Shown one piece after another: positions 1-62,833 of a DNA stretch of 64,000 nt. The DNA comes from Callorhinchus milii (lineage: Eukaryota), in contig NW_024704771.1 of assembly GCF_018977255.1 (NCBI RefSeq), forward strand, positions 2,108,001 to 2,172,000. The letters run 5' to 3'. The stretch's first letter is position 1, and every line of letters starts with the position of its first letter. The position numbers were made by a program, and so were the translations under genes. Below the pieces are notes generated by a model. That model was not told the origin of the DNA. It saw only the letters and a list, made by a program, of their open reading frames with translations, and ran no database searches.

Positions 1-1263
1 TTTGAAGTCAAATCCACGGCCGGTGATACCCACCTGGGGGGCGAGGACTTTGACAGCCGCATGGTTGACCACTTCATCCAGGAGTTCAAGAGAAAACACA
101 AGAGGGACATCAGCCAGAACAAGAGGGCGGTCAGGAGGCTGAGGACAGCCTGTGAGAGGGCAAAGAGGACTTTGTCTTCAAGCACCCAAGCCGGCATTGA
201 GATCGACTCCCTCTTTGAAGGCATCGACTTCTACACCTCCATCACCAGGGCACGGTTTGAGGAGCTCAATGGGGACCTGTTCAGAGGGACCCTGGAGCCA
301 GTGGAGAAAGCATTAACTGACGCGAAGCTGGACAAGTCTCAGATCCAAGATGTGGTCCTCGTCGGTGGCTCCACTCGCATCCCGAAGATCCAGAAGCTTC
401 TGCAGGATTTCTTCAACGGCCGAGAGCTGAACAAGGGCATCAACCCAGATGAGGCAGTGGCTTATGGTGCGGCTGTGCAAGCCGCCATCCTGATGGGCGA
501 CAAGTCTCAGAACGTGCAGGACCTTCTCCTGCTGGACGTGACTCCTCTGTCCCTGGGGCTGGAGACGGCGGGAGGCGTGATGACCGCCCTCATCAAGAGG
601 AACTCAACCATCCCCACCAAACAGACCCAGTTCTTCACCACCTACTCCGACAACCAGCCCGGCGTCTTGGTGCAAGTGTATGAGGGTGAGAGAGCCATGA
701 CCAAGGACAACAACCTCCTGGGCAAGTTCGAGCTGAGTGGCATCCCCCCGGCCCCCCGTGGGGTTCCGCAGATCCAGGTCACCTTCGACATCGATGCCAA
801 TGGTATCCTGAATGTCTCGGCTGCTGACAAGAGCACAGGCAAGGAGAACAAGATCACCATCACCAACGAGAAGGGTCGGCTGAGCAAGGAGGAGATCGAG
901 AGGATGGTGCAAGAGGCCGAGAACTACAAGGTGGATGACGAGTTGCAGCGGGAGAGGGTGGCGGCCAAGAACGGGCTGGAGTCGTTCGTCTACGCAGCCA
1001 AAAGTGCAATGGAGGACAAGAGCACAGAGGGCAAGGTGGGCGAGGAGGAAAGGAGGCAGGCGCTGGACAAGTGCAGACAGGTCATTGCCTGGCTGGATGG
1101 AAACCAGACGGCGGAGAAGGAAGAGTTTGAGCACCAGCTGAAGGAGCTGGAGAGGGTGTGCAGTCCTGTCATGGCCAGGCTGAGGCAGGGAGGGGCAGCG
1201 GGGAGCGAGCAATCGGGCAAGAGCTGTCCATCTACGGGCCCAACCGTGGAGGAAGTGCATTGA
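1..1263 (+). CDS. hsp70: Heat shock protein 70, inducible/intronless HSPA1-type; 5'-partial
   Basis: Open frame from base 1 ([18 protein letters not shown]) through [30 protein letters not shown] and the substrate-binding domain to ...[11 protein letters not shown] 1261-1263. No introns in the visible part. Confidence 0.97.
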
Positions 1264-3041: not shown

Positions 3042-3955
3042 TTACAGAAATTTAAACTTATTGAAAACTTCTCTCAAGTCAGACTGCACCAGATCAGTGT
3101 GGCGTCTCTCTCTGATGCTCGTAACAATGTCATGAAGTGCGTTCGAACACTTGCCGTAGAGTCCGCTCTTTAGTAAGAAGCTTTCTGCCTCTCGCAGGCC
3201 GGTCAGAGCTGTGCCGGCCGTCACAGACGGGGTCGTTCTCCTCAGAGTCGCTGTCACTGTCGTTCTCGACTAGCAAGCGCTCGGCGGCCACAGCTTCAGT
3301 CACGATTGCCTCGTGGTCCTGGGGATCACGGCGGAGTAGATCAGTGTCAATGTCCAGGAACTGGTCAGTGATCTGCCTCTCGCCCTCGGCCTCTGCGCTT
3401 GTCCTCCCCTCAGCCTCAGTGCAGGGAGCAGCGTCACCAGTCACAAACCCGGCCTTTGCGAAGCAGTCGGATATGATCGCAGACTTCATGCTCTCCCAGG
3501 CGCTGGCAACCATACCGATGGCATCCAGTAGGCTGATGTGTCTCACCACCTCTCCCACCGTGGCGTGGGGGCTGATCACGTTGCCTTCGATGGCGTCCAG
3601 GAGGCGCTTTTGTAGCTCCTTGCGGTAGGAGAGCTTCAGGTTTCGGATGACTCCTTGACCCATGGGTTGGATCAGAGTGGTGTCCGGGGTATCAGCTCCA
3701 GGCAGATGTTCTCGAGGTCGGAATGGGCAGGTGACACGGTGGGCTGTCCATGAAAACAAGAATCTTATGCCCCTGCTCGACCAGCTCTGTGTCCCACTGC
3801 GTCAGCCACTCCTTAAAGATCCCTCTCGTCATCTTATTGGCCTTACAGGTGATGGGCAGAACAGTGAGGTTGACCCCATTCATACAGCAATGACCAGCAG
3901 TTTGCGCCGGTCGCTGCCGGTCATGTTGACGCAGACGCAGATGCGCTGTTTGAGA
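3042..3955 (-). mobile_element. Degenerate Tigger/pogo (CENP-B/TIGD-like) DDE transposase relic
   Basis: Broken-frame peptides KQRICVCVNMTGSDRRKLLVIA, MTRGIFKEWLTQWD...KILVFMDSPPCH, IQPMGQGVIRNLKLSYRKEL, ISLLDAIGMVASAWESMK...CFAKAGF and an acidic tail ENDSDSDSEEND. Stops and frameshifts; no TIRs seen. Confidence 0.8.
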
Positions 3956-4213: not shown

Positions 4214-4530
4214 AATAATAATAATAATCCTTGCATTTGATATAGCGCTTTTCACGTCGGGAGGACGTCCCAAAGCGCTTCACAGAACACACTGTAAAGT
4301 GAATTGACTGTATATTTGTGGGCGAACGCGGCAGCCAATTGCGCACAGCAATGTCCCACAAACAGTCGTGGATTGAAAATGACCAATTTATTATTGTTTT
4401 GGTTTTGGAGGGATTATTATTAGGCTCTGTGTGGAGTAAGGAAACTTGCCCAAGGTTTCGCCCTCTGCCTGGAATTGAACTCAGGTCTCTCACTTGCAAA
4501 GCGAGTGCTCTAACCACTGAGCTACAGGAC
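4214..4530 (-). mobile_element. Full-length tRNA(Ala-like)-headed SINE with Deu-like core and L2-type 3' tail
   Basis: Minus strand reads tcctgtagctcagtggttagagcactcgctttgcaagtgagagacctgagttcaattcc (A box, TGC anticodon loop, B box), then core ttggctgccgcgttcgccc and tail gtgaagcgctttgggacgtcc...(ATT)n. Further copies or fragments at about 9125-9350, 32562-32812, 35545-35930, 54745-54880, 55430-55640 and 61615-61960. Confidence 0.85.
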
Positions 4531-5464
4531 TCCAAATTTCAAAGGGCTTCACAGAATAAACTGTGAAGTGCATTGACTGTGTATTTTGTGAGCAGAGTAT
4601 GGCAGTCAAATGCATACACCATTGAACCACAAACACTCTTGGATTGAGTGACCAAGTTATTTCTTTTTTAATTCAGTTGGGAAGGATGTGGGAAGTGAGA
4701 GAAGGGGTGGGTTTAGCTGTTGGAGGTAGGGGAGGCAGCCCTTGCAGTGCGGTGATGATGGGGCAGTCGGGGTGGCTGCTCTGGGACAACCATTGTCAAG
4801 TGTTGCGGAGCTCCGGGTGGAGGAGGCCCAGGGCTGGAGCAGAGGGAAGTCTGTGGAAGGGCCGAAGAGAGAGAGCAGGTGAGGTGGGTGACAGGAGTCA
4901 AGACCTGAATGTAATAATAATTCTTACATTTGACATAGCACCTTATCACATCTTTCAGACGTCCCAAAGAGCTTCACACAATATCATGTAAAGTGAATTG
5001 ACTGTGGCAGTCAATTACACAGAGGTGTCCCACAAATGCAGTGTCCAAATTCTTTTTTTAAGGGATTATTCCCCACAGAATGCGACTAAAATGGTTGCTA
5101 TGTACTGCTTGGTAAACAGAGGCATGTAGAGTAAGGAAAGTTGCCTGAGGTTTCGCCGCTTGGGCATCGAACCCACGCTCGACAAGAGCCCAATCTGATA
5201 TGTAGAGAGAGAATAACATTAACAATAATCCTAGCATTTAATATAGCGACTTACCACTTATTCAAGGTGTCTCAAAGGGCTTCACAAGATATACTCTAGG
5301 GTAGTGTAGTGACTGTATATTTTGTGGGCGAAGTGCAGCAGCTGATTGTGCACAGCTGCGTCCTCACAAACAGTCATGGATTGAAATAACCACATTATTA
5401 TTATTGTTGTAGGGATTATTTTCCCTGGAAAAGTGACCCAGCAATCGACCAACAACTGGGTGAA

Positions 5465-5640: not shown

Positions 5641-5887
5641 TAGAGTCGGATAGAGCGCTTTCACCCGCGCAGTGCATTGTGGCCTCAGGGCACCGCCATT
5701 GCTGCTGTTCCTTCCGGTCAGTGTCAGCAACACAAACCCCCGCACAGGCGGCGCTGATCCAGGCCCAGGGGGAAGATCACAGCCACAAGACTCCCAAACA
5801 AGCAGCTTCTGCTGAACTCTGGGTCTGGACACACCCCCAAAGCCTGAAAGTGAAAGCAGTTTGTGGGAGTGAGCGGTGGAGGGGGAC

Positions 5888-6307
5888 ATGGCCGGCAGAG
5901 AGCAGGACCAGAGCTTAGCAGAGGATCTCACTTGCCCCGTTTGCCTTGACCTGTTCCGGCATCCGGTTTATCTGTTGTGCGGCCACAACTTCTGCCGCTC
6001 GTGTATCGCAGGGTTTTGGGAGAGGCAGGAGGCTCACTCCTGTCCGGAGTGTCGCCAGTTGTGTCCAGGAAGTGAGCTGAAGCCCAATCGAGTTCTGGCC
6101 AGTCTGGCTGAAAAAGCTCGGAATCTCAGTCTGGATCCGAAACGGGGAGAAAGGAAACATTATTGTGATGATCATCGGGAAGAGCTGAAGCTGTTTTGTG
6201 AGACGGATGAGAAATTGATCTGTTTAATGTGTCTGATTTATCCGGAGGAACAGAATCACAAGTCACACAATGTCATGTCGATAGACAAAGCTGCTGAGAT
6301 CTACAAG
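5888..6307 (+). CDS. TRIM-A exon 1: C3HC4 RING + B-box
   Basis: CPVCLDLFRHPVYLLCGHNFCRSC...CPEC; CDDHREELKLFCETDEKLICLMC...H..H; donor AAG|gtac. Confidence 0.93.
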
Positions 6308-6399
6308 GTACACAAGGAGCGGATTTTATAATATTACTGAAATTCTCTCTTTCTTGAGCCGAGTGTCTGACACATGTGGAAACTATTGCTGTCCTTAAG

Positions 6400-6730
6400 A
6401 GAATCCAAACCAGGCGGTGATTGGGATACATGGGAGAAACTATTTCCATTGGCGGGGGTGGGGGGTCAGTAACCCGAGGACAGTTTGATAATAGTTACAA
6501 GAAATGGAGGAGAGATTTTTCACACAGCGAGTTGTTAGGATCTGGAATGATTGTCTGAAAGGGTGGTGGAAGCTGATTCAATAACAACTTTTAAGAGAAG
6601 TAGATAATTATTTGGGAAGGACAAGTTTTCAGGGCTATGGGGAGAGAATGAGGGAGTGGGATTGATTGGGATAGCTCTTCTCACAGACATGAGGGGCTGA
6701 ATGGCCTCCTTTTGTGCTGTGATTCTATGA
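6400..6730 (+). mobile_element. CR1-type LINE 3' fragment
   Basis: ...ggggctgaatggcctcctttgtgctgt followed by a (gattctat)n-type tail. Related fragments at about 9760-10310, 22280-22470, 28200-28520, 29030-29230, 31040-31400, 48100-49660 and 57650-58250. Confidence 0.7.
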
Positions 6731-7001
6731 TAATTATGATTCTATGATACATTTGCTGCACACGGAATATTGCCCTGTGTCACCCTGTTTACAAATCAGT
6801 TGAGTATTTGGCATAGGCCGACAAGAGCCAAGGCTTGTGTATCCCAGAGTATGTGTCGGAGGAGCTACTAAGTTTAACCAGTTAAACGGCATAGCTGGCC
6901 TTTGAGAGCGCTGTCTGTCAGGCTTCCCGCTGTGTGTTCTCTGGTCACACTGACACGTTTAACAATGTGTTTGTTTTGTTCAATTTCCATTTCGATTGCA
7001 G

Positions 7002-7097
7002 GAGAAACTGAAATCATATTTCAATTTGGTTCTCAAGAGAAAGGATGCTGTTCTCCGAGCTGAATTTGGACAAAAAGAGAAGATTTCTGTCCTGAAA
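7002..7097 (+). CDS. TRIM-A exon 2 (96 nt, coiled coil)
   Basis: ttgcag|GAGAAACTG...CTGAAA|gtaagt; same length as TRIM-B exon 2. Confidence 0.88.
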
Positions 7098-7325
7098 GTA
7101 AGTTGCTGTGTGATAGACTGCACTCTGTTGTGATTGCCTGCACTCTCACCTATGAGCCACAGTGTTGTGGAATCCAACCTCACTATGGTCTCTCAGTCGT
7201 GTCGCTCTCTTTACTGTGTGATGTCTGGGCTCTCAGTCGTGTCTCTCTCTACCGTGTTGTCTGGGCTCTCAGTTGTGTCTCTCTTTACTGTGGCCCGTTG
7301 TGATGTCGGACACCTCATTTTACAG

Positions 7326-7559
7326 GAACAGGCGAGGAGTCTGCAGAACGATATCACGGCTGAGTTTGTTGAAATGCACCAGTGCCTCAATGACACAGAG
7401 CAGCGTGTCGTGCGAGAGCTCAGAGAACGAGAGGAGAAGATTTTACACCAAATGGAGGAAGCTTTTACAGCGTTTGAAGAGGAGATAAAATCTATTGACC
7501 AAGAATTAGCAACGTTACAGAGGCAAATGGACGAACAGGACATGGGCTCCTTTCTGAGG
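7326..7559 (+). CDS. TRIM-A exon 3 (234 nt, coiled coil)
   Basis: tttacag|GAACAGGCG...CTGAGG|gtaaga; EQARSLQNDITAEF...GSFLR. Confidence 0.9.
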
Positions 7560-8139
7560 GTAAGAAAAGGAGATTGTTTTTATTTATTGAATAATAATCC
7601 TTGCATTTTATATAGCACCTTTAATTTCCTTTTAATGTCTCAAAGTGATTCACAGTAAAGTGTAGTGACTGTATTTTGTAGACAAACACAACAGCGAATT
7701 TGGACAGAACGTGTCCCACAAACAGCAATGAAGTGAATGACCAATTGTATTTGTGAGGAACTCCCTTCATGTTTCCAGTCGTGCCTGGGATCTTTAACGT
7801 CCACCCGAACAGACTCAAACAACACCTCGGGTTAACGTCCAAAGGACGGCACCTCTGATAATTCCGTGCTCCCCCAGCTCTGCAAAACAAACAACGAAAC
7901 AGAGTGAATTTCAGCTCAGCCCTTACATTCGCCTACAAAAACACCCAGTCACTACACTTTATGGTGAATCCAGTGAAGTGATTGAGACATCCTGTCGATG
8001 TGAAAGGCTCTGTACCAAATGCAAAGCTCCTTCTTTTTACCTTGTGTAAAGCTCCCTGAGTGAGCCACCGTGTGGAGATTGTTCCACTGAGGGTTATCGG
8101 CTGTGAACTCTGACCAATCTGTGTTTTGTTTCATTTCAG

Positions 8140-8162
8140 GAGGAAGTTTCTCGGAAGATCAG
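8140..8162 (+). CDS. TRIM-A exon 4 (23 nt)
   Basis: atttcag|GAGGAAGTTTCTCGGAAGATCAG|gtctga; near-identical to TRIM-B 18491-18513. Confidence 0.85.
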
Positions 8163-8592
8163 GTCTGACGTTCTCTTCATACAAACTGATTCAATCAATA
8201 ATATCAAAGCAGTAACCACGAGATGTTCATGTTAATATGTCAGAGAGGATTCACTCTGCTGCCTGTGACCTTTCTGCCACCACCCCCTCCTCACCTTCCC
8301 CTGTCCCCGTCCGGACCCCACCCCTCCCTCCCTCCCTCCCTTTTAATGCCCTCCAAGATCTTGATCCTCCCTACCTCTGTGACCTATTAACACTGTCTGT
8401 CTGCTTCAACCCAGATCCCCCCATCGCCCTCCCCTCCTTTAAGGCCCATCTCAAGACCTTCTTCGGCCACTCTCCAACCCTCTTGATTCCAACCTCTGGC
8501 TCGGGTGTAAAACCTTGACTGTCCAGCTCCTTGGGACATGTTTTTGAAGTGTAAATGTAATTTTTTGTTTGTTGTTGTTGTCATCTTTGCAG

Positions 8593-8699
8593 TGTCAGTG
8601 AAGAATGGATAGAGCCATCAGTGGTACAAGGAAATCTGACTCTGGCAATACCCAAAGGCCTCACAGTGTGGAGAGAAATGATCCACACAATCAGCCTTG
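8593..8699 (+). CDS. TRIM-A exon 5 (107 nt linker)
   Basis: tttgcag|TGTCAGT...AGCCTTG|gtaaac; in-frame 9-nt deletion relative to the 116-nt TRIM-B exon. Confidence 0.85.
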
Positions 8700-8769
8700 G
8701 TAAACAGTCCCTGCCTCATCCTTCACTATAAAGACCTCACTGTGTGGTAGATGCAGGCGATTGTTTTTG

Positions 8770-9085
8770 CTCAGAAGCCGGGTGTCTGACACAGGTGGAA
8801 ACCCATCACTCCTCCTCCTGGTCCCCCGAGATCTCCGCTCCACCCTTAGCAGCCGTGCCTTCAGCCACTATGCCCCGAAGTTCTGCAAGTCCCTTCCTCA
8901 CTCCCTTCGTCTCGCTCCCTCCCTTCCTATTTTCAGGTCTCTGCTGAAGACCTTTCTTTTTGACCGCGCCTTTGGTCACCTTCCTTCCTCTCCCACTGGC
9001 TCGGTCCCAGGATCCGTTACTGTGAAGCGCTCTGAGATACCGTCTGGCATGGAGGGCGCTATATAAATCCAATTTGTTGTTGTAC
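8770..9085 (+). mobile_element. L2 LINE 3' fragment (second 3'UTR subfamily)
   Basis: gccttcagccactatgcccc...ggctcggtcccaggatccgttactgtgaagcgctc...(GTT)n; same type as 48267-49056 and about 12230-12450. Confidence 0.75.
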
Positions 9086-9459
9086 TCTTCTGAGTCTCTG
9101 AACCAGTCTGAGAGTTCCACATATAATAATAATAATCCTTGCATTTGATATAGCGCTTTTCACGTCGGGAGGACGTCCCAAAGCGCTTCACAGAATACAC
9201 TGTAAAGTGAATTGACTGTATATGTGTGGGCAAACGCGGCAGCCAATTGCGCACAGCAATGTCCCACCAACAGTCGTAGATTGAAAATGACCAATTTATT
9301 ATTGTTTTTGGTTTTGGAGGGATTATTATTAGGCTCTGTGTGGAGTAAGGAAACATATATTCCACCTACACATAGAAATTTTCCTGTGTCTCGCCAGTCC
9401 TGACTGGGTTCCAGGATGTCACCACCTCCTGCCTCTCGGGGCTCTCACACAGACAGACA

Positions 9460-9752
9460 CTCATCCAAAGAGAGACACATACTCAAAGACACAGAGAGAG
9501 ATATTCTCAGACACACAGAGATACACACACTCACAAACACAGAGCGAGACACATACTCACAGATACAGAGAGACACACACACAGATGCATACTCAGCGAG
9601 AGAGAGATACACACACCAAGAGAGACTAATATTCAGACAGAGAAAGACACATACAGATTCACCCTCAGAGAGAGAGAGACACACAAGCAAAGAGAGCCAC
9701 ACAGACATACACAAACACAGAGACAAAGGCATACAGATACAGACACACAAAT
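9460..9752. repeat. AC/AG low-complexity repeat in TRIM-A intron 5
   Basis: (acacagagag)-like degenerate array; counterpart at 17690-17880 in TRIM-B. Confidence 0.8.
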
Positions 9753-10715
9753 GAACACAGGAACAGGTGTGGGCCATTGAACCCTTCAAGCCTGTTCTGC
9801 CATTCAATTGGCCGATCTGTTCCTCAACTCATCCTGTCAATTCCAATTTCCCGCTTTTTCCCCATATCCCTTGATACCCTGACCACCAAAAATCTACCAA
9901 CCTCACACTTGACGGTGTGGATGGATTAAGATCCATAGCGCTTTGAGACGTCGAGAAGACGTGAAAAGCGCTATATCAAATGCAAGGATTATTATTATTA
10001 TAGTCTTTTGGAGGAGAGAGTTCCAGATTTCTACCATCCTTTGAGTGAAAAAATGCTTTCTGATTTCACTCTCAAGTGGCCTGGTTCTAATTTGAAGACT
10101 ATGCCCCTTGTTTTAGATTCCCCAAACAGAGGTCATAGCTCCTCTGTAACTACTCTATCAAATCCCTTCACCATCTAAACACTTCAATCCAATCACACCT
10201 CAACCTTCTAATCTCAAGGGAATACAATCTAAGTTTACGTAGCCTATCCTCGTATCTTAACCCTTTAAGACCTGGTAACATGAACCTGTGCTGCACCCCT
10301 CCAGGGCCAATATACCTTTCCTGAAGAAAGATATGGTCACACAGAACCACATACAGACAGAGAGAGACACACTGAGAGACAGAGGAGCGAGACACAGACA
10401 GCGCGCCCCACAGCGGCTCCTTAAAGCCAGGCACTAGGCAGTGGTCACCAGCCAGTGAAGCCCATTTCCCACCTGCAGTGCTGCCACCATCCCAACCCCC
10501 ATCACCACGCACACACGTCCAGAGCCGCTACACCAGTCACGTGCACAGAGGCCTGGGGCCGAGCAAACCACTTACTGGTATTCGTGGGAGCAGAGAGGTG
10601 CGATCTTCTATTGGAACCAGGGTGGCTGGTCTATCACGAGCAGCTGCTTCAGTGTTAAAATCAATTTCTCCCCAATCAAAGTAATCACTCACTGTGTTTT
10701 TTCTCTCTCTCTCAG

Positions 10716-11285
10716 CTCCGGCCCGTCTGACTCTGGATCCTGACACAGCCCATCGCTGGCTTATCCTGTCTAAGGATCTGACCAGTGTGAGATTCGGGGA
10801 AAAAAATGAGCAGCAGCTCGGTAACAACTGGAAGAGGTTCAGTTACTATCCCATTGTCCTGGGATCTGAGGGCTTCACATCAGGGAGACATTACTGGGAG
10901 GTGCAGGTGGGCAACAAGACTGAGTGGATTGTGGGATTGGCCACAGAGTCCATTGACAGGAAGCAACAAATCAAATGGTCGCCAGAGGGTGGGGTCTGGA
11001 CTGTGCGGTTGTGGTGTGGGGATTATGCGGCTCTGAACTCACCTCCCACTGTCCTGCCCATGAGAGAGACCCGGGAAGGTCGGAGTTTACTTGGACTATG
11101 AGAGCGGACAGGTGTCATTTTACAATGCTGACAACATGTCTCATCTCCACACTTTCATGAACACTTTCACTGAGAGACTTTATCCTCTCTTCTGTCCCTG
11201 GTATAATAATGATGGGGAAAACTCTGAGCCACTGACAATCTGCTGGTCACAGGATAAACCTGTCTCAGCCTGGCTCAGTCAGTAG
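10716..11285 (+). CDS. TRIM-A exon 6: B30.2 (PRY/SPRY), frameshifted
   Basis: [12 protein letters not shown]...GRHYWEVQV, then shifted frame [15 protein letters not shown]...LYPLFCP; ORF track 10694-11101 and 11091-11285. Confidence 0.9.
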
Positions 11286-11620
11286 CGCTCTGGCCTCTGA
11301 GTCTGAAGATTGTGGGTTCAATCCCCACGTCGGGGATTTTAAGATCAGTGACTCCAGTGCGGTCCAATACGTTGGCACATCATCCCGACGTGAAAGGCAC
11401 TATACAAATGTAATCTTGTTGTTGTTGTTGCAGTCCTGGGGGAAGCTCTGCATTGTCAGAGTTGCCCTCCTTTAGATGGAGTGGACATGAAAGATCCCAC
11501 GGTTCAAAGAGGGGAAGCGAGTTTCTCCCAGTGTTCTGGCCAACAATCCCCCAAATAAGATTGGTCATTTCCTTCATGGCTGTTTGTGTGCAATCAAGTG
11601 CTTTGGGATAACCTCCTGAC
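11261..11620 (+). mobile_element. tRNA-derived SINE, second family (SacSINE1/DeuSINE-like), overlapping the TRIM-A stop codon
   Basis: Head tggctcagtcagtagcgctctggcctctgagtctgaagattgtgggttcaatccccac (A and B boxes). Interrupted by a short L2 tail at about 11370-11428. Orthologous copy at 16875-16975 (minus); other copies at about 2330-2760, 7600-7930, 18650-19080. The family name is recalled, not searched. Confidence 0.75.
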
Positions 11621-12501
11621 GTGAAAGCTCTTTATAAGTGTAAATTGTATGACAGGAATAATAATAAAAATCCGTACATTTGGAAAAGCAGCTTTCACTT
11701 TGGGATGACATCCCAGGATACACTGCAAGGTGCAGTGACTGTGTGTTTTATGGGTGAGCAAAACACATTGTATCATATTACTCTTAATGTAAAATCGTGT
11801 GAAGTTTTTTGAGACGTTTCGATGATGTGATTTAGCCCGAAATCAAAAACAGGGATTATTATGGTCTGGGCGGGAACTTCGCATATACTTGATGTATCCG
11901 GGGGTGAAGTGGTTAAATTTTACAGGCCGCTTATCTGGAACATGGGAAATTTGGGTGGGTGTCAATCTGCCGAGCTTGGCAGCGTGATCTTGTCAGAAGT
12001 TTTCACCTTTACTTGACAATGGCATTGAGAGTAAAGTGATATGTTCAGCAAAGATATGGAAATGTACAAACTGGATACATTTTGGGATAATTGCAAATAA
12101 TTGTAAAGTGGAAATTGCACAAATGTACACTCTCTGCGCATTACATAATTGTGCGAATAAAGAACCGACCGGAGAAATCATATCAATGAATCGCCTAAAT
12201 CACTATGAATGTCACTGATAGTGCTTTTAGCTGCTGCGCCCCGGAAGCTCTGGATCCCTCCCTCAGTCCCTCCGCCCCTTGTCCCCTCCCTCCTCACTTT
12301 CAAATCCCATCTAAAGACCTTACTTTTTGATTGCGCTCACCGTCACCTCCCCCCTCCCTCTCTCCCTGGACTGGGGTCAGACTCCACCGCTGTCAAGCGC
12401 TCCGGAACGCTGCCCCGTGTGAAGGACGCTATATAAATGCAAGTTATTGAATGTAAACTTCAAGTCTAATAAGTGGAGACATTGCTGTGCGGAGGTGGTG
12501 C

Positions 12502-15999: not shown

Positions 16000-16500
16000 G
16001 CTTGGCTCTGGAACCAGACCACTGAGACAGCCACAGAGGATTAACCTGATACTGATGTTTGGTTTCCAAGCATATCACCTTGGAGTCGGTTCAGCTTCAA
16101 GGAGAATTTGCTTACCTCCCTCTCCCCCATCCTCTGGAGGATCGTAACAGAGGGAGAGAGAGATCCCTGCCTCCGTTAAGCCCACCCTCAAAAAACCTTC
16201 GCTTGACCCAACTCTGTTCTCCAACTACCATCCCATCTTGAACCTTCCTTTTCTCTCTAAGGTCCTGGAAAGAGTCGTTGCTTTCCAGCTTTGTTCTTTC
16301 CTCTCCCGCCATTCTCTGTGTGAACCCCTCCAACCTGGTTTCGGTGCTGCCCACAGCACAGAGACAGTCTTGGTCAAAGTTCCAAACGACATTGTCTCCA
16401 TCTGTGACTGGGGCTCTCTCTGTCTCCTTGTCCTTTTTGATCTCACTGCTGCCTTTGATACTGTCAACCGCTCTTCTTCTGCACTGCATCTCCTCTCAGT
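16000..16500 (+). mobile_element. L2 LINE reverse-transcriptase fragment
   Basis: [17 protein letters not shown]...QPGFGAAHSTETVLVKV...DLTAAFDTV. Confidence 0.8.
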
Positions 16501-16951
16501 TCCGCGACTATCATACTATTTCATTGGTCACCAGCACGCAATTGGCAACAACCCAAAGCCTTACATTAAGTCAGACTCATAATACATTACAACAAAGCAA
16601 TGCACTTTTGGGATGAGCTGGGAGGGTTAGCTGATGGATTTCATATTATTAGCTGTGTAATTTATAACCAGGATACAGCTGTGCCTGCCTCAATCACCCA
16701 GTGTTTATACCTTTGGTCGCGTGCGCTGCCGCTCACAAAAAATGCGGGAATAATTCAGAGAGTGGAACGCCAGGCAAGACAAGATACCGACTGCCCAGAG
16801 TGAGCGCGCGCTACATAAATGAAAGTCGCTGTTGTTGAGCCGACCCATCCAGGCCCCACTAATACCATCACAAATGCACTGGAGCGCAATGAGTGTAAAG
16901 TCCCCAACATGTGGCTTGAACCTACAACCATCAGACTCAGAGGCCAAAGCA

Positions 16952-17520
16952 CTACTGACTGAGCCAGGCTGAGACAGGTTTATCCTGAGACCGGCAGATT
17001 ATCAGAGGCTCAGAATTTTTCCCTACAATATAATACCCAGGATTGAACAGAGGATAAAGTTTCTCAGTGAAAGTGTTAGTGAAAGTATGGAGATGAGACA
17101 TGTCATCAGCGTTGTAAAACGACACCTGACCCCCCTCATAGTCCAGGTAAACTCCAATCTTCCCAGGTATCACTGTCAGAGGCAGGCGGGTGGGAGGTGA
17201 GGCCAAAGCCTCAAAACCCCTGCCCCCGAGCTCCACAGCCCAGACCCCACCCTCTGGTGACCATGTGGTTCGTTGTTTCCTGTTGATAGACTCTCTGGCC
17301 ACTCCAACTGTCCACACATTCTTGTTGACCACCTGCACCTCCCAGTAATGTCTCCCTGATGTGAAGCCCTTAGATCCCAGGACAAAGAGATATTTACTAA
17401 ACCTCTTCGAAGAGTCAGGGAGCTGCTGCGGTTTATCTCCGACTCTCACGCCGGTCAGGTCCTCAGACAGGACGAGGCAGGGATGAGCTGTGTCAGGATC
17501 CAGAGTCAGAGAGGCCGGAG
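16952..17520 (-). CDS. TRIM-B exon 6: intact B30.2 (PRY/SPRY)
   Basis: [13 protein letters not shown]...GRHYWEVQV...[15 protein letters not shown]...LYPLFNP...SAWLSQ*. Confidence 0.92.
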
Positions 17521-18288
17521 CTGAGAGAGAGAAATAACACAGTGAGCGATTGTTGATTGTGGAGAGATTAATATAAACACTGAATAATTTTCCTTTTGCA
17601 AAAGTGGCTGCTGATGGCAGGCCAGCCACCCTGGCTCCTGGGCCGGGCCAATAGAAAGTCATTCACTGTGAAAAAGTGCGTCTGTCTCTGTCCCCGAGTG
17701 TGTGTCTCTCTCTCTTTGTGTGTTTGTGTCTCTGTCGGTGTGTGATTTTCTCTACCTGTGTGTGTGTGTGTCTTTCTGTGTCCCTGTGTGTGTCTCTCTC
17801 TCTATCTGTGTGTGTGTGTGTGTCCGTGTGTCTCTGTCCGTGTGTTTGACTTTCCCTGTCCCTGTGTCTCTCTGTCTGTGTATGAGCTCCTGGAGACCTG
17901 CAGTCAGGACACTGGTGAACATGGTGAGCAATGCTGAAGTTTAGCGGATCTCCAGACCTTCAAATCTAGTGTTGGGTGGAAATGGACCTTTCGGCCCTTT
18001 GCGCCTGCACTGCTGCTAAACATCAGCAGTTATCCCAACCAATACACCCTATCAGGGGTCCCCAAGCCTTGGCTCTTACAAGCCTCTGACTAATAGTTTC
18101 CATTCCAGATACAGGGAAACTTCATTGCGAAGGTGACATACGTTTGCGGAACTCAGTCTGGTTTGGAGACTCTGAAGCGCGGTGATGGGTTTAAACATGT
18201 GATAGACACACGACTGCTGATCAAATCAACTCTGCATCTGCCGCCCAGTGAGGGCTTTACGGTGCGGGATGATGTAGGATCTCCTTAC

Positions 18289-20000: not shown

Positions 20001-20418
20001 CTTGTAGATCTCAGCAGCTTTGTCTACCGACATGACGCTGTGCGATTTGTGATTCTGTCTCTCGGGAGAAAAGAAACACATCAAACAGATCAATTTCTTA
20101 TCTGTTTCACCAAACAGCTTCAGCTCTTCCCGATGATCACCACAACAATGTTCCCTTTCTCCCCGTTTCGGATCCAGACAGATTTCTAGCTCTTTCGGAC
20201 AGATTAGCCAGAGGTCGACTGGCTCTCAGCTCCCTTCCCGGACACGCCCGACGACACTCCGGGCAGGAATGAGCCTCCTGCCTCTCCCAACAGCCTGCGA
20301 TACACGAGCGGCAGAAATAGTGGCCGCAAACCAGAGAAACCGGATCGTTGAACAGGTCAAGGCAAACGGGGCAAGTGAGATCCTCTGCTAAGCTCTGGTC
20401 CTGCTCTCTGCCGGCCAT
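20001..20418 (-). CDS. TRIM-B exon 1: RING + B-box, frameshifted
   Basis: MAGREQDQSLAEDLTCPVCLDLF...CGHYFCRSC...CPEC; shifted frame HCCGDHREELKLFGETD...IYK|gtaaac. Confidence 0.9.
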
Positions 20419-20999
20419 GTCCCCCTCCACCGCTCACTCCCACAAACCGCTGTCACTCTCAGGCTTTGGGGCTGTGTCCAGACCCAGAATTCAGCAGAAT
20501 GCTTGTTTGGGAGTTTTGTGGCTGTGATCTTCCCCCTGGGCCTGGATCAGAAGGTAATAATAATAATAGTCATGACATTTCCACAGTGGGAGGGTGTGAG
20601 ACGGGGACAAGAGGAAGCGCCGCCTGTGCGGGGGTTTGTGTTGCTGACACTGACCGGAATGGACAGCAGCAATGGCGGTGCCCGGGAGCCATAATGCACT
20701 GCGCGGATGAAAGCGCTCTATCTCTGCGTGACTCCGCGCACGCGCACTGCCCGTTCCTTTGCCGAGCGCTGCAGTGCCGGAGCAGCGCATGCGTGGAGAT
20801 GCCCAGCGCTTGAGATAGAGGGCTTTCTCTGGCGCGATGCATTGTGGCTCCCAGCCCCCGCCATTGTTACCCACCTGAGCCTCTGTCACTGGCTGCACTT
20901 TGTGTCTGGGACCTTGGGCTGAGCTGCTCCAAGAGGTGGAGGTGCCTTTTGCAACGAAATGTGGGAATCGACTCCACCCTCTTCACAGCGATCCTTCCC

Positions 21000-33600: not shown

Positions 33601-36600
33601 GAAACAACTTAACAACACTCAGTAATTGGACTGTCAGAGAGGATTCTAAAGGTCTCTTCATTGTTAAAAGCGAAATAGAAATAATCCGTTCAACCAACAA
33701 GATCAGGTGTCTGATTCACAATTCAGAAAATGAACAAGAAGCAAAACTCCAAATCTCAGGTCAGTAAATGAACAAGAAGGAAATATTAATGATTGTTTGT
33801 TAAATATGATGCAGATTTGTACAGCACATGAAGTGAAAACTCGATCAGTCTGGATGATACGGTCCACTTGAGTTCATCCTTTCAAAATACCAAACTCAGC
33901 ATGTGGTTTGAGAACAACAAATTACATTTGTAAAGTGCCTTTCATGTCAGGAGGACGTCCCAATGTGAGACACACTATACAAAGGTCCAACCCCATGTTG
34001 GACCCGATCTGAAGTTTGGGGTCAGGAGGGATGGAGGGCAGGGTGGGCGGCAGTAGGAATGAATGAATGAAAGCTCGGTGAAAGAGGTGGATCTTGACAA
34101 GTGACTGAGCGAATGGAGGGTCTGTGGATGGAATTCTACAGAACTGGGGCAGAAACAGAGTTAGCTTATCACAAAGATCAGGAGAAGCAGGGCCATGGAG
34201 GGTTTTGAAGCCATTGAATATTCTCATTACAAACTGAAATCAATTCTGATTTCAGTACTCCAGCTCACCCATCCTTCCTGCTAACCTATTCAAACTGTGA
34301 TTATCTTGTGAATTAATCAACACTTCATAACTCACAGCCACCATTGCTTCAGAAAAGGCAAAAGTTGCCTGATCCACCTCACAGTGAAGGGAAGACTACA
34401 GGTTAAGAGCTGAGAAGCTAGCACAACAACAAAAGACATTTGTAAAACATCTTTCAAATTGGGAGGATGTGCGAAGGTGCTGGACTGTCAGGGAAATGGA
34501 CCTGAGCTGGGGAATAGGACATAATTATAGGACATCCACATGGAGGCAGCATTTCCATTCACTCAGGTTCATGAGTTGCCAGGTATTGCTCGGTCATCAC
34601 TGTTATATTGGACAGCACATTGTTAGTGACCGTCTGTTTGATTACCAACAAATGTGGTCATTTAATACATCACTATCTCCTGTTCAGCCTTCTCTTCAAT
34701 TCACTTTGTATCCCTATGGATTTATCTTGTTCCCGATTACCCTCTATTTGCTATTTTTATGGAAGAATGTTTGGGATTCTGCTTTACATTTGTTCCAATG
34801 TTCTCTTTGGGGTCTCAATTTCTATTTACTTGACATTGAAGGATAGAAGTTCCTCCATAAATCACATTTGAAAACTAAAATTAAATAGATATTAGGAATG
34901 GTTTCCTTTCCTCTGGCATGGCAATTCTCTTTCACAAATGCTGCCATTTACGCTCTTCAACTTAAACTTTCACTGAATTCCTTACAGTCTCTCTAGCCGT
35001 TGCCCCATTTCCAACCTGCCCTTCCTCTCCAAGGTGCTGGGATGAGTTGTAGCCTGGAAGATCCATTCCTTCCTTTTCCATCATTTCCTGTAAAATTCTC
35101 TCCAAACTGGCTTCCTCCCTGCCCACAGCACCAAGAGAGCCCTGGACAAAGTCACACCAGATGTTCTCTCTGTTGATGACTAGGGCTCCCTGTGTCTCTT
35201 TGTCCTTCTCTATCGCTCTATCACCTTTCACACTTGTCCACTTCTCCTCCCTGATTCACCTCACATCCTCTGTACTTTGCTAGTTTCATGCCTGTCTCTC
35301 CCAGCATCTCCACTTTATCTTACCAATGGCTTCACATCTGCCCAGTATATTCACAGAGGGGGTTCCTCAAAGCTCCATCTTTGTTCCTTTTCTTTTCCTT
35401 ATCCATACATTCACCCTTGGAGTCTGGCTCTCAGGGACTGGACTAACGGGACGGCCACAAAGAATGGATTTTATTCTGACATTCCCTTAACAACCACATC
35501 CCTTTAGTGCCACTTCAGCTCCAAGACCCCAATTCTCTGCCCAGGAAAAGTACATAATAATAATTGTAGGATTTGATACAGTGCATTATCACGTGTTTGA
35601 ATGAAACATCATAAAGAGCTTCACAGACTATACTCTTAAGTGAATTGACTGTATATTTTGTGGGTGATACACGGCAGCCAATTGCACACAGCAGTGTCCC
35701 ACAAACAGTCACGGATTGAGTGACCCAATTATTATTATATTGTATTTTTTGATGGGATTATTAGCCCTGGAAAGCGATCTTCCAAACAATGAACAAGCGG
35801 GTTCCTACTTAACTGCTAAGTAAACAGAGGCATGTGGAGTAAGGAAACTTGTCTAATGTTTCTCTCTGCCTGGGAATCTAACCCGTGTCTTCTCACATGC
35901 GAGGCGAGCGTTCTATCCAATACACTACCAGGACTTCACTTTGAGTGAAGCCCGTGACAGCTACTGAGCTATTGTGTGTAATACAGTCACTTGAGGGTAA
36001 ATAAAGATATTTATTGTTTTGACATCAGAATAGATACTTAAATGTCTATTTACATTTCTTGACAGACGAGTTCTTTCCCAAAGTGCCAGTGGGTTTGGTG
36101 GTTTCCTCACTGCTCTTAGGACTTGCCATAATGATGCTGAGTGTTCTGGTCGGCTACAGTGTAAAACAGCATCGAGAGATCAAAGGTACGTTCCCATCAG
36201 TAACATCTCTCATCACAACACTTACTGTATGAATGTGTAAGTTCTATAAAACAATTGGTCTCTCCCTTCACTCAGTGACCTCCGGTCTGTTTCATGTCAC
36301 CACCCGATCCTCCCCACCATCAGCAGGTCAGGCTTTCAGCCTCTCTGCCGCCACTCTCTGCAACTCAATCCAAGAATCCTTCTGTCTCGGCCCCTCCCTC
36401 ACCTCGTTCAAGGCCCATCTCATGACCTACTTACTCTGCTTTTTCAGTTAATATTCCCATCTCCCTCTGCTGACCCTCCACCCCGGCTCCCACCTCCAGC
36501 TCAGACCCCAGCATTGTCAGTGCTTTGGGATGTCCCCCGCTGTGGAAGGTGCTGTGTAACTGTAAATTTTATTGTAATTCAAACCTCATATAATTGTGCT

Positions 36601-39600
36601 GAGCTGCACTTTGTGTAGTTTATATCTGTTAATGTTGTAAACATGTAGACTGACCATTAAACTATTCTGGATTCAGAAATCGGTTTCTAACAGTTCTGTT
36701 TTGTATCCTCTAGATCTTGAGAAGAGAGTGGGTAAGTTATCAAAATAAAATAACAATTTTAAATGTGATCAGTTTCATTCACATGCTTCACACAAAACAG
36801 ACATAAGGACATTGAGGTGCAGTAAAAGTACATTTGTTTGCCAACAAAATACCCACTCACTACACTCTCCAGAAAACTCTGTGAAAATCTAACATACAAG
36901 GATTATTATTATTATAGGACAACAACTTGCACTTATATAGCACCCAGCTTTCAGGATAACGTCTCAGAGTGCTTAATAGTGGCAGATATCAAATGCAAGG
37001 ATTATTATTATATTGTGTATTATAAAGAGCCTTTTTTTCGGGGGGGTGGGGGGGGGGCTGGGTGGGAGGTGACCGTAAACACGATCGAAAAGGAAGTGTT
37101 TCAGTTGGGACTTGAAAAAGGGGAGAGAGAGGGCAACAACAACAACAACGGGAACGGGATTGAGTGAGAGTGTTCCAGAATTTAAGGGCGAAGTGGCTGT
37201 ATGCATGATTTCCAATGGTGGAACAGAGGGGAAGTAGACAGAGAAGTAGATAGGTACGTATATGAGGGATAGAGGCTTGAAGGGGTTTAGTTGTAGGGCA
37301 GGGCAGCTGTTGTATGAACACTTTGATCTGAGAGCCCATATAGACTTGGTGGTGAATGGCCTCCTTCTGGGCTGTAAATTTCAATGATTCTATTCCATAA
37401 ATTATTACAGACTGTTTAACTCCAACCATTGGTCTATTTCACATCTTCAACTTTCCCTTCTCTTCCCGAAGACAACATTGGCTTGTGAACATACACACAC
37501 TAAAGGGGGAAAAAAATGAGTGAGCTTCAATGAGGGAGGGAGGGAGAGAAAGAGGGAGAGAAAGAGGGAGGGCATGAGAGAGGAAGAGCGTGAGAGGGAG
37601 GGCGTGAGAGAGGGAGGGCATGATAGCAGGAGGGAGTAAGAGGAGGAGGGTGTGAGAGGAGGAGGGATGGAGGGAGGGAGTGAGACGGAGGGAGAGAGAG
37701 AGATGATGGGGGAGAGAGAGGGAGTGAGATGGAGGGAGCGAGAAGGAGAGAGGGACAGAGGAAAGGAGAGACGGAGGGAGTGAGAGAGGGAGTGAGAGAC
37801 GGAGGGAGTGAGTTAGAGAGAGTGAGGGAGAGGGAGGGAGGCAGTGTGACTTGGTTAGGAGCTGCCAAAGATCTGATCACTTCTTTCTTCTTGGTTCCAG
37901 TGTTGAAAAGGATTCGCAGGTGTGCAGGTAAGAGTCTGAGTGACCGAACCACCAACCTCCAACACACTGACTCCCCACCACCCCATACACAGTCACATCA
38001 CCCTGCCCCCCCCCAAAAAAATAGACTTTCATACCCACGTCCCTCACATATATATTCCCCCCGCGCACACATTCCCCCCCACGTACACATCAACCCCCCC
38101 ACACGCAGATCAATCCCCCTCGCACACATCAAATCCCCTCGTACACATCAACCCCCCCTCACACACATCACCGCTCTACGCACACATCACCTCCACATGC
38201 ACACCCCCCCCACACGCACACATCCCCCACACACACCCACATTCCCCCCACACACACCTTAACACATTTCCCCCACTCACACCCCCCCCCCCCAACACAT
38301 ATATTCATATTTACCTCACACACACCCTCACATCCCCGGGCGCACCCTCAACCACCCACATATCACCCCAAACTCACACGCTCACACTCCGCGTCACACT
38401 TACACACATCCCACCCATACAGTCTCCCTCAAATCACAACCCCCCCCACCCCACACACCATTACACACACCCTCGCAAACCCTCACACACGCTCACATTC
38501 ACCCACATACACACATGCTCATCACCCGCCTCACTCACACCCTCACATTCCCCCCACACACACCTTCATATCCTCACCTCACACATCCTCACACCTCCCC
38601 GACATATCCTCACATCCCCAATCCCACTCAGAGCCTCACATCCGCCACACATATAACATTACATACACCCCACACACTCTCATATGGACTCAAACTCATA
38701 CCTCCAAGTACCCTCACACACATCCTTGTATCCTCCCACACACCCTCACAAACACAACCTCTCACACACTCACATCCCCCTTCCCATTCACAACCTCACA
38801 TCCCCACACATACAACATCAAACACTCCACACACCTTCATACACACCCATACACACCCCCACAAATACCCTCACCACACCCACATCTTCCGCTCACATCC
38901 CACCAATCCCCAAAACACCATCAAGCTCCCACACACCATCACATCCTCCCCCATCACACACACCCTCATATGCCCCAAACACAAGCTCACATCGCCCCAA
39001 CAGACACACACTCAAACCTCCGCAACACCCTCAACACCTCCAACACATACACCATCACATGCCCCCACACACATCCTTGCATCTCTGCCAACAAAACCTC
39101 ACATCCCCCCCACACACACCCTCACATCACCCACACAACTTCACATCACCCACACAACATCACATCCCCTCCCCCACACACAACCCCTCCACACACACTC
39201 ACATCTCCGCCCACACACACCATCATTTCCACCCACGCACACACACTCTTACATTGCCCCCATACACAACCTCACATCCACACACACCCTCACAAACCTC
39301 CACACACCATCACATCGGCCCCACACACACCCTCACATCACACCCCCAAACACAGCCTTACATCCCCCCACACAAAACTTCACATCCCCACGCACACAAG
39401 CTCACATCCCACCTCAAACACATGGCCATTTCCACCCCCACACACACTCACATCCCCCCTCACATGCCCACATTGCCCCCATACGTACGCCCACATTAAA
39501 CCCCACATTACACCCCCCACATACCCTCACATCCCCACACACACCCTCACATACCAGCACCATATCCTCACATTGCCCCCACACATCCTCACCTCCCCTA

Positions 39601-40926
39601 CAGATACACCCTCACATCCCCCACACACACTCACATCCCCCCCCCACACACACCCTCACATACTCACATACAAACCTCACATCTCCCACCAACACACAAT
39701 CTCACCCCACCGCAAACACCCTCACCACCTCCCCACACACCCTGACCGTGCCCACCCCATACACCATCTTATGCCCCCACCCACAACCTCACATAGTCCC
39801 ACATCCTCACACACCCTCACCGCCCTGTAATCACCACCCCCAGATGGACGCTCACCACCCCTAACTCCCCTCACCCCCCTCATACAAACCACCACCCCAC
39901 ACATATCCTCAACCCTCCACACACGCTCACATCCCCACCCACACACACATCTTCACATCCCCCCTCTCACACACATATTCCCCCCGACAAAGACACCCTC
40001 ACATCTCCCACACATGCACCCTGACAGCCCGCACACACACTCACCATCGGATTCCACCCCCCACACACAATCTCACAACCCCCACACACACCCTCAAATC
40101 CCCCTACACAGACATCCTCCCCACATACCCTCACATGCCCACTCACACTCAAATTCCCCACACACCCCCACATCCGCGCCCCACACACCCCCACATCCGC
40201 GCCCCACACACCCCCACATCCCCGCCCACACACACATTCTTACATCCCCCCTCACACACACAGACTGTCAGCCTTTCTGCTGGATTCTGTTCCCAGGAGA
40301 TGTCAATGTTTTACACAAAGGCTTCTCTCCCGGTGACGACGCTGAAGATCATCTTATTTATAATTGTAAATGTGTCTGACATTAATGGTCTGATTCTCCC
40401 TCCAGTTACAGTCACTCTGGATCCTGACACAGCCCATCCCCTGCTCATCCTGTCTGAGGACCGGACCAGTGTGAGACTCGGAGACAATCAGCAGTCGCTC
40501 CCTGACTCCCCGAAGAGGTTTAGTTTGTATCCCATCGTCCTGGGATCTGAGGGCTTCACATCAGGGAAACATTACTGGGAGGTGCAGGTGGGCAACAAGT
40601 CATGGTGGATTATGGGATTGGCCACAGAGTCTGTCAACAAGAATCAACGAATCACTTGGTCAGCAGAGGGTGGGGTCTGGGGGGTGAGGCTGAGGGGCAA
40701 GAGCTATGATGCTCTGTCTTCACCTCCCACCCGCCTGCCCCTGACAGTGAGACTCGGGAAGGTCGGAGTTTATCTGGACTATGAAGAGGGACAGATATCA
40801 TTTTATAACGTTGACAACATGTCTCATCTCCACACTTTCACACAAACTTTCACTGAGAAACTTTATCCTCTGTTCAATCCCTGGTATAATTCTGAGCCTC
40901 TGACAATCTGCCCAGTGACAGGTTAA
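30552..40926 (+). CDS. Butyrophilin (BTN/BTNL-like): signal peptide-IgV-IgC-TM-B30.2, intact, 455 aa
   Basis: Exons 30552-30609, 32916-33263, 33484-33759, 36066-36185, 36714-36731, 37901-37927, 40406-40926. All junctions are phase 1 with AG/GT; total 1368 nt, no stops. AATAAA at 41398-41403. Confidence 0.93.
31590..32570 (-). mobile_element. Degenerate L2 LINE in BTN intron 1
   Basis: [16 protein letters not shown] and downstream L2 ORF2/3'UTR similarity. Confidence 0.7.
32916..33263 (+). CDS. BTN IgV exon (348 nt)
   Basis: [11 protein letters not shown]...DVVLDC...EVRWFR...VYLYKEG...YRHRTQLF...[22 protein letters not shown]. Confidence 0.95.
33484..33759 (+). CDS. BTN IgC exon (276 nt)
   Basis: [10 protein letters not shown]...[19 protein letters not shown]...KGLFIV...IRCLIHN. 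Confidence 0.95.
36066..36185 (+). CDS. BTN transmembrane exon
   Basis: [40 protein letters not shown]|gtacgt. Confidence 0.88.
36714..36731 (+). CDS. BTN 18-nt juxtamembrane mini-exon
   Basis: cctctag|ATCTTGAGAAGAGAGTGG|gtaagt. Confidence 0.75.
37520..40260. repeat. GA-rich tract (37520-37850) and 2.3-kb C/A-rich degenerate minisatellite (37960-40260) in BTN introns
   Basis: (cacacaccctcacatcccc)-like units; the long His/Pro/Thr ORFs here are by-products of the repeat. Confidence 0.9.
37901..37927 (+). CDS. BTN 27-nt mini-exon
   Basis: ttggttccag|TGTTGAAAAGGATTCGCAGGTGTGCAG|gtaaga (VLKRIRRCA). Confidence 0.8.
40406..40926 (+). CDS. BTN B30.2 (PRY/SPRY) terminal exon
   Basis: [12 protein letters not shown]...GKHYWEVQV...[15 protein letters not shown]...PLTICPVTG*. 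Confidence 0.93.
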
Positions 40927-62700: not shown

Positions 62701-62833
62701 CGAGCTGTCACTTCGTATTTCATGTTGTTGTCGTGAATTACAGGGAACTGGACGTCTTGCCCGACGGAGAGATTGGTGACAGTGTCCGGGATGGCCCACA
62801 CAGCCGGGCTGCCCAGTCTGGCACAGAGCAGGA
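56617..62833 (-). CDS. CD2/SLAM-family receptor (IgV-IgC2-TM-short tail ending YxxL); leader exon not located
   Basis: Exons 62833-62462, 60021-59743, 59269-59161, 56815-56780, 56710-56617, all AG/GT with consistent phases (1,1,2,2) and no stops. The V domain lacks the B/F-strand cysteines; the C2 domain has four Cys. Confidence 0.85.
56780..56815 (-). CDS. Cytoplasmic exon (36 nt)
   Basis: tttcag|...DAQESAMCETCR|gtgagc; phase 2-2. Confidence 0.72.
59161..59269 (-). CDS. CD2/SLAM-like transmembrane exon (109 nt)
   Basis: tttcag|GGRYHWVILVVLLLLLSVSLVVGIKHNKTLRRLSAL GG|gtaagg. Confidence 0.85.
59743..60021 (-). CDS. CD2/SLAM-like IgC2 exon (279 nt)
   Basis: EPVAQPVVKVTTNCS...TLTCSA...W...DSYTCVAHNPVS...DLCP|gtgaga. 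Confidence 0.92.
60085..61503 (+). mobile_element. Young L2 insertion in the intron between the IgV and IgC2 exons, antisense to the gene
   Basis: [19 protein letters not shown]; GVPQSSVL; 3'UTR and (GTT)n; very similar to 44220-45583. Confidence 0.92.
62462..62833 (-). CDS. CD2/SLAM-like IgV exon (372 nt)
   Basis: VGQDVQFP...YRDRVQLTVNGSLLLKNVHMEDSAEYRI...TFHLKVF|gtgagt. Confidence 0.9.

Follow-up and report, generated by a model that had tools for sequence, protein, structure and literature searches.

Vertebrate genes whose coding sequence ends in a transposable element are known, for example those in which Alu or other SINE sequence gives the C-terminal residues and the stop codon. In classic exonisation an intronic element, often in antisense orientation, is recruited through new splice sites. 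In Callorhinchus milii, the elephant shark, the SINE family SacSINE1-CM (SacSINE1 from Nishihara et al. 2006, as cited in Luchetti et al. 2017, PMC5499810) combines a tRNA-related head and a Deu domain with a ~160-bp 3' end common to the CmiSINEs and the L2-2_CM LINE. The family has ~218,000 copies with a mean divergence of 22% from the consensus, and is older than the tRNA-Ala-headed CmiSINEs (PMC5499810). SINE matches in C. milii mRNAs were all in 3'UTRs, and no coding overlap was reported (PMC5499810).

Here we describe two class IV TRIM genes of C. milii, TRIM-A and TRIM-B, whose reading frame next to the stop runs into a downstream SINE. As in the known transposable element-derived coding ends, a host ORF takes its final codons and its stop from the SINE, and the extension lies outside a folded domain. 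Unlike classic exonisation, the change is a 1-nt frameshift in the terminal exon, and the sense-oriented SINE was already in the 3'UTR. The element is like SacSINE1-CM in being old and diverged (its head is 80–86% identical to a Deu-SINE probe, which is not a curated consensus), and it differs from the matches of that study (PMC5499810), which were only in 3'UTRs, in overlapping coding sequence. The locus shares with stop-loss and frameshift extensions in decaying duplicates a small indel near the stop and an ORF that continues to the next chance stop, here 10 codons on, and departs from them in that the extension was inherited by at least three paralogues, one of which looks intact. The kind of event is already known and reveals no new mechanism; it offers a clean, datable example of a single-base loss that makes a 3'UTR retroposon coding and is then spread by duplication in an immune gene cluster.

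The window, by which we mean the whole 64-kb stretch analysed, has the character of vertebrate DNA (depleted CpG, three N gaps). Its best protein-search matches are C. milii 'zinc-binding protein A33-like' models, several of which sit on the 4.1-Mb scaffold MU249860.1 (GCA_018977255.1). The NCBI model P0001 corresponds to TRIM-B, and the Ensembl model P0002 and the older NCBI model P0006 correspond to TRIM-A. The probe for the first homologue search joined exons 1–3 of TRIM-A to the last exon of TRIM-B, using intact exons only and crossing no stop. Pfam places RING and B-box domains on TRIM-A exon 1, whose translation is identical to residues 1–140 of P0006, and PRY and SPRY domains on the TRIM-B last exon; coiled-coil exons are present, as in a class IV TRIM (RBCC-B30.2). 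The pair shares RING, B-box2, coiled coil, PRY/SPRY and exon plan with the cartilaginous-fish class IV TRIMs annotated as 'zinc-binding protein A33-like' or 'nuclear factor 7-like', and, as in class IV TRIM expansions, B30.2 is in the last exon and many tandem paralogues lie on one scaffold. Canonical members end 0–5 residues past ...IC, unlike TRIM-A and TRIM-B, which have a tail of 13 residues and lesions that break the frame. Homology between the two loci takes in introns as well as exons (5649–11360 against 20722–16876) at 72–93% identity, 78–86% over long blocks, and they form a tail-to-tail inverted duplication. An IgC exon and a B30.2 exon on one strand mark another gene of the window, BTN, as butyrophilin-like. 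The features are collected in Table 1.

Table 1. Coordinates in the window of the TRIM-A, TRIM-B and BTN features and of the SINE sequences behind the TRIM stops; TRIM-B exons are given as listed on their strand.
Feature	Position	Strand	Basis or remark
TRIM-A exon 1 (RING + B-box2), ORF intact	5888–6307	+	ORF; Pfam RING/B-box matches
TRIM-A last exon (PRY/SPRY + derived tail), frame broken	10716–11285	+	acceptor ...CTCTCAG/CTCC
2-bp deletion in TRIM-A, between 11062 and 11063	11060–11065	+	CCCATG--AGAGAG against CTGACAGTGA in TRIM-B and BTN
Premature stop in TRIM-A entry frame (...GRSLLGL-stop)	11099–11101	+	ORF 10694–11101
Shared 1-nt deletion site, after ATCTGC	11241–11246	+	alignment with BTN and the P0024 gene
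Derived 13-residue tail + TAG, TRIM-A	11244–11285	+	codons 11265–11282 and TAG inside SINE head
Old stop TAA, out of frame, TRIM-A	11255–11257	+	DNA homology to BTN ends exactly here
New stop TAG, TRIM-A	11283–11285	+	sequence
Degenerate tRNA-like SINE head, TRIM-A	11264–11336	+	Rfam tRNA model; Deu-SINE probe
Nested 72-bp insert: 3' tail of another L2-dependent retroposon, ending (TTG)n	11361–11432	+	TRIM-B without insert
Deu-like body + L2-type tail of TRIM-A SINE	11433–11655	+	probe; homologous to L001 9830–9962 downstream of the P0015 gene
TRIM-B last exon (PRY/SPRY, ORF intact) + tail	17520–16952	-	ORF 16952–17662; Pfam PRY + SPRY; equals P0001 C-terminus
New stop TAG, TRIM-B	16952–16954	-	sequence
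Old stop TAA, out of frame, TRIM-B	16980–16982	-	sequence
SINE head copy, TRIM-B, decayed	16876–16973	-	84% identity to TRIM-A 11264–11360; 80–82% to probe head
TRIM-B exon 1, carries 2-bp deletion	20001–20430	-	sequence comparison
BTN-like IgC exon	33453–33767	+	Pfam C2-set_3 (BTN3A2-like), E=1e-21
BTN-like B30.2 exon, ends ICPVTG-stop (outgroup state)	40402–40926	+	ORF; alignment

The end of BTN, ATCTGCCCAGTGACAGGTTAA, occurs once (40906–40926), in frame with the B30.2 ORF, and reads ATC TGC CCA GTG ACA GGT TAA (ICPVTG-stop). In a second outgroup, the canonical paralogue P0024 gene (locus L002), the end is ATC TGC CGA GTG ACA GAT TAA (ICRVTD-stop). After ATCTGC(C/T)G, TRIM-A, TRIM-B and the gene of a third paralogue, P0015, each have one base fewer than both outgroups; the shared place of TAA in BTN and the P0024 gene supports a gap of 1 nt. 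Window positions 11238–11285 of TRIM-A are ATCTGCTGGTCACAGGATAAACCTGTCTCAGCCTGGCTCAGTCAGTAG, reading 15 residues that begin ICW, and the reverse complement of 16952–16999 in TRIM-B is ATCTGCCGGTCTCAGGATAAACC...TAG, reading 15 residues that begin ICR. From CAGGATAAA through the TAG the two genes are identical for 36 nt. The last six tail codons and the stop are SINE-derived, and the SINE also forms the start of the 3'UTR.

The initial annotation had described a 1-nt loss in both TRIMs that strands the old TAA out of frame, with read-through into a tRNA-derived SINE that provides the TAG, begins the 3'UTR and leaves identical last codons in the two genes, and had placed the origin before the duplication. 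The loss agrees with BTN and the P0024 gene; the stranded TAA, the read-through, the identity through TAG and the SINE-derived start of the 3'UTR are all seen in the sequence, the TAG lying in the D-arm region just past the A box. An origin before the duplication is supported by the head common to TRIM-A and TRIM-B at 84–86% identity and by a third paralogue with the same junction and SINE body. The old TAA had been located correctly in TRIM-A and one position off in TRIM-B (16979–16981). Among the best 120 chondrichthyan TRIM homologues the tail occurs only in the P0001 (TRIM-B) and P0002 (TRIM-A) models, and ~115 others end 0–5 residues past IC (ICRL, ICRVTD or ICGIKGH before the stop) without it, so the long tail is derived. 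The word exonisation has to be given up, for no splice site was created, the tail is contiguous with the B30.2 exon with no intron between them, and the cause is the 1-nt deletion. The event is a frameshift extension into a 3'UTR retroposon and not splice-mediated exonisation.

We consider it likely, from the comparisons made here, that a 1-nt frameshift into a downstream SINE was inherited by duplication in a decaying gene family. The ancestral class IV TRIM gene would have ended ...PLxIC-R-V-T-D-TAA, with a tRNA-headed Deu-type SINE (SacSINE1-CM-like, L2-mobilised) in sense orientation 0–6 nt from this stop. One base lost in the codon after the Cys would have shifted the frame, the old TAA being read as GAT-AAA, and translation would have gone on for 10 codons to the TAG in the D-arm of the SINE head, adding a 13-residue tail past the last B30.2 strand. 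Gene duplication would then have copied the tailed state, giving the inverted TRIM-A/TRIM-B pair and the P0015 gene elsewhere on the scaffold. Subsequently P0015 would have lost 275 bp and acquired its 22 SINE-body-encoded end residues. We infer that the SINE was inserted before the base was lost. The head lies inside a continuous A/B homology block that runs from intron through exon to head at similar identity, which places both the SINE and the 1-nt loss before the inverted duplication. No A/B homology was found past 11360/16876, where different insertions interrupt each side. What the DNA itself shows is the anatomy of the sequence, the derived state in common and that the segment is a SINE; as a whole it has the look of an ordinary by-product of gene family decay.

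Neither TRIM-A nor TRIM-B has one uninterrupted ORF through all exons. In the B30.2 exon of TRIM-A, PRY is encoded in the frame of 10718, which is the entry frame, and the C-terminal portion of SPRY in that of 10716. Because the 2-bp deletion lies 180 nt upstream of the tail and the entry frame stops at 11099–11101, translation from the start codon never gets to the tail. Contrary to the initial annotation, TRIM-A therefore does not take its last codons from the SINE in its true entry frame. That annotation overlooked the 2-bp deletions in the TRIM-A B30.2 exon and in TRIM-B exon 1. The latter, present in this assembly, is near 20180, between RING and B-box (AATCT--GTCTGG), and the B-box of TRIM-B has in addition lost a zinc ligand by a Cys→Gly change (LFC→LFG); as a result of these lesions in exon 1, P0001 begins at another ATG, in another frame, and has no RING domain. 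Public gene models dodge both 2-bp deletions. P0002 jumps frame at the TRIM-A deletion (VLPMRE/RPGKVGVY, the slash marking the jump), and P0006 runs off in the wrong frame. We conclude that TRIM-A and TRIM-B are probably now pseudogenes or decaying copies. The value of the locus is mostly for annotation: the NCBI 'zinc-binding protein A33-like' model (465 aa) and UniProt A0A4W3HJA6 carry a SINE-derived tail at frame-broken loci, and a third public model, P0015, terminates in SINE-body codons, which is a further warning.

It seems unlikely that TRIM-A, TRIM-B or both are intact, working genes, with 2-bp deletions that come from errors of assembly or from rare alleles and a tail that is translated in functional proteins. 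The Ensembl model P0044, whose TRIM-B-like exon 1 reads NLSLDPK without the deletion and differs from TRIM-B at only two residues, would fit such genes, as would a pairwise dN/dS of 0.56, which looks not fully neutral. However, neither deletion is in a homopolymer, the deletion in TRIM-A is implied twice independently (by P0002 and by the window), and the NCBI model of TRIM-B, from the same assembly, also avoids the RING frame. The B-box Cys is replaced by Gly in both TRIM-B and P0044. The A/B exon identity is about the same as the intron identity, and dN/dS in the B30.2 exons is 0.5–0.77 for every pair, a range in which dead and live copies are not separable and which makes the single value uninformative. 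P0044 fuses the TRIM-B-like exon 1 (aligned to window 20176–20385, minus strand) to the downstream exons of P0015; this exon 1 could come from another allele, from an additional copy or from a misjoin in the old assembly. The lesion in TRIM-B may accordingly be confined to one allele or one assembly, unless there is an additional copy. The assemblies also disagree on a homopolymer in the TRIM-A last exon, where the A-run at 10799–10805 is A7, an in-frame 3-nt insertion relative to TRIM-B and BTN, and P0006 implies A6.

The tail is probably a tolerated, functionless, neutral appendage. Homology to solved B30.2 structures (pyrin, TRIM21, BTN) stops at ...IC, which puts the 13 added residues beyond the B30.2 fold, and the new TAG is reached 10 codons past the old stop, about the chance spacing in random sequence. 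We regard it as distinctly improbable that the SINE-encoded tail is, or formerly was, a selected, functional C-terminal module of MHC-linked TRIMs. The tail is identical at 40 of 42 positions between TRIM-A and TRIM-B, as compared to 81% in the B30.2 exon (up to 82% is cited for the flanks) and 79% after the stop, and this could be one hint of past constraint, with a nominal binomial p of ~0.01 for a region chosen post hoc. The 36-nt identical run is nevertheless within the range expected for the 716-nt A/B alignment at 82% identity, in which the longest identical run, 42 nt, lies outside the tail. Public annotations contain the tail and the apparently intact P0015 likewise ends in SINE-encoded residues; against this, both tail-bearing copies are frame-broken, and P0015 has deleted the head-encoded tail, its own coming from another part of the SINE. 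When the last 45 residues were searched among 5.8 billion proteins, only P0001 and P0002 carried the tail, a weak negative in that three candidates were scored.

The C. milii model P0015 (491 aa, 'nuclear factor 7, brain-like') has RING, B-box, PRY and SPRY domains and is apparently intact. Its protein ends ...ICWSPTVLANNPPNKLIIGLMAICGL before the stop, the final 22 residues being encoded by SINE body. In the DNA (L001, on MU249860.1 at ~1,923,400–1,923,800; 3' end 9798–9962, against window 11215–11655), ATCTGCTGGTC is joined directly to the homologue of window 11524–11655. P0015 lacks 275 bp that TRIM-A has (203 bp if the nested insert is left out), and the junction shows TC microhomology; the deletion took away the old stop together with the SINE head and some of the body. 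The stretch in common with TRIM-A consists of SINE body and tail, including the oddly decayed end GTGTAAATTGTAT.ACAG, and the coding part of the P0015 tail matches other SINE copies. The comparison indicates that the frameshifted junction and the SINE are ancestral to at least three paralogues (TRIM-A, TRIM-B and P0015), and that P0015 later exchanged its head-encoded tail for a body-encoded one. Selection might be supposed to have kept SINE-encoded C-termini in this MHC-linked TRIM subfamily, with the P0015 tail (SPTVLANNPPNKLIIGLMAICGL, 22 residues, largely hydrophobic, encoded by the Deu region) replacing a functional tRNA-head tail. This is highly improbable; if true, part of an ancient conserved SINE domain would have been domesticated, in the P0015 tail, to work as protein sequence.

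The P0015 locus shows further peculiarities. The BTN B30.2 exon (40414–40881) is 89.5% identical to the P0015 B30.2 exon (L001 9314–9781) and only 80–83% identical to those of TRIM-A and TRIM-B. The BTN/P0015 similarity ends 45 nt ahead of the BTN stop, a pattern suggestive of gene conversion or shuffling at exon level between BTN and TRIM genes. Beyond GTGTAAATTGTAT.ACAG, the SINE 3' region is in opposite orientation at the TRIM-A and P0015 loci (window 11655–11800 against L001 9963–10101), pointing to either a local inversion or separate insertions. An AATAAA occurs at 11663, within the inverted tail. Upstream of the P0015 gene sits a truncated B30.2 remnant (L001 ~3275–3590, minus strand), which we considered as a fourth SINE-tailed copy and rejected: it ends ATCTGCCGGTTATTGTACTAA (ICRLLY-stop), is of the ICRL/ICRF type and has no SINE.

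The segment past the old stop has good, though not curated, support as a ~390-bp sense-oriented tRNA-headed SINE that starts 0–6 nt after the old TAA. The Rfam tRNA model aligns full-length to 11264–11336; the match scores 19.5 bits and falls short of the gathering score of 29, with an E of 0.1 over 4227 families that is far lower for the single pre-stated tRNA family. An A box (TGGCTCAGTCA, 11271–11281) and a B box (GGTTCAATCCC, 11315–11325) are 44 nt apart, as in a tRNA, and the TAG is the 'GUAG' of the D-arm, right behind the A box. The Deu-type SINE common in sharks was represented by an uncurated 448-nt probe, which serves as a lead; its computed matches number 28 across the window, with 81–86% identity between the probe head and the TRIM-A head (11264–11336). 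The TRIM-A element is colinear with the probe (head 11272–11339; body 11481–11561, probe 181–271; tail 11596–11643, probe 397–445). Independent copies at 2585–2651 and 57311–57373 match the body, and an independent old, near-full copy lies at 2355–2738. The end of the element (11596–11655) lines up with at least eight other copies in their ...GGGACGTCC..GACGTGAAAGGCGCT.TA.AAATG.AA tails; the nested insert, flanked by the repeat CGGTCC/CAGTCC, likewise matches at least eight other tails in the window.

A head with A and B boxes, interspersed multiple copies and a LINE-related 3' tail ending in a short repeat are the marks of a tRNA-derived SINE, and the family looks like the old C. milii Deu type, similar to SacSINE1-CM, judging by the probe matches and the literature description. 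The 5' end falls within 11258–11264 and the 3' edge abuts an inverted SINE tail from 11655, and no target-site duplication was recognised; a search for a sharp 5' end and a duplication through other head copies in ~100 kb gave 4–5 head copies, too few and too decayed. It is scarcely credible that the segment resembles a tRNA by chance, that it is a tRNA pseudogene, or that the A/B identity stems from recent gene conversion. In favour of such readings, the tRNA score in TRIM-A is below threshold, Rfam in E-value mode found no tRNA in the too decayed TRIM-B head, both ARAGORN and Rfam at gathering thresholds called in the window only the tRNA-Ala head of a different, young CmiSINE (4460–4530) and not the TRIM-linked heads, and head copies are as few as just stated. 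Against them, the segment is colinear with a multi-copy element in head, body and tail alike, the body is common to independent copies, the same element lies downstream of a third paralogue, and the A/B homology is unbroken from intron through exon to head.

Young CmiSINE-type copies are present at 4214–4532 (minus strand), 9123–9354 and 32561–32818. They are 86–98% identical to copies in L001 and far younger than the TRIM-linked SINE; the tRNA-Ala head of the first gets 40 bits from the Rfam tRNA model. LINE reverse transcriptase fragments lie at 16238–16582, 44104–44745 and 60034–60480 on the plus strand and at 46242–46631 on the minus strand. Pfam RVT_1 was found on both fragments tested (16238–16582 and 44104–44745), the former of which is just downstream of the disrupted SINE of TRIM-B.

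Directly upstream of the TRIM pair is the 3' two-thirds of an HSP70 gene (61–1263, plus strand; Pfam HSP70, E=5e-133), and with HSP70 beside TRIM and BTN genes the neighbourhood resembles an MHC-linked one. At the right end of the window, two minus-strand ORFs (59702–60040 and 62379–62876) with Ig-domain matches (Ig_3, E=2.5e-7, and a weak V-set match) are probably exons of another Ig-superfamily gene. CA/CT-rich low-complexity tracts at 37700–40400 and 52600–53620 give rise to spurious (P/H/T)n ORFs of up to 449 aa, and one of these tracts is intronic, immediately upstream of the BTN B30.2 exon.
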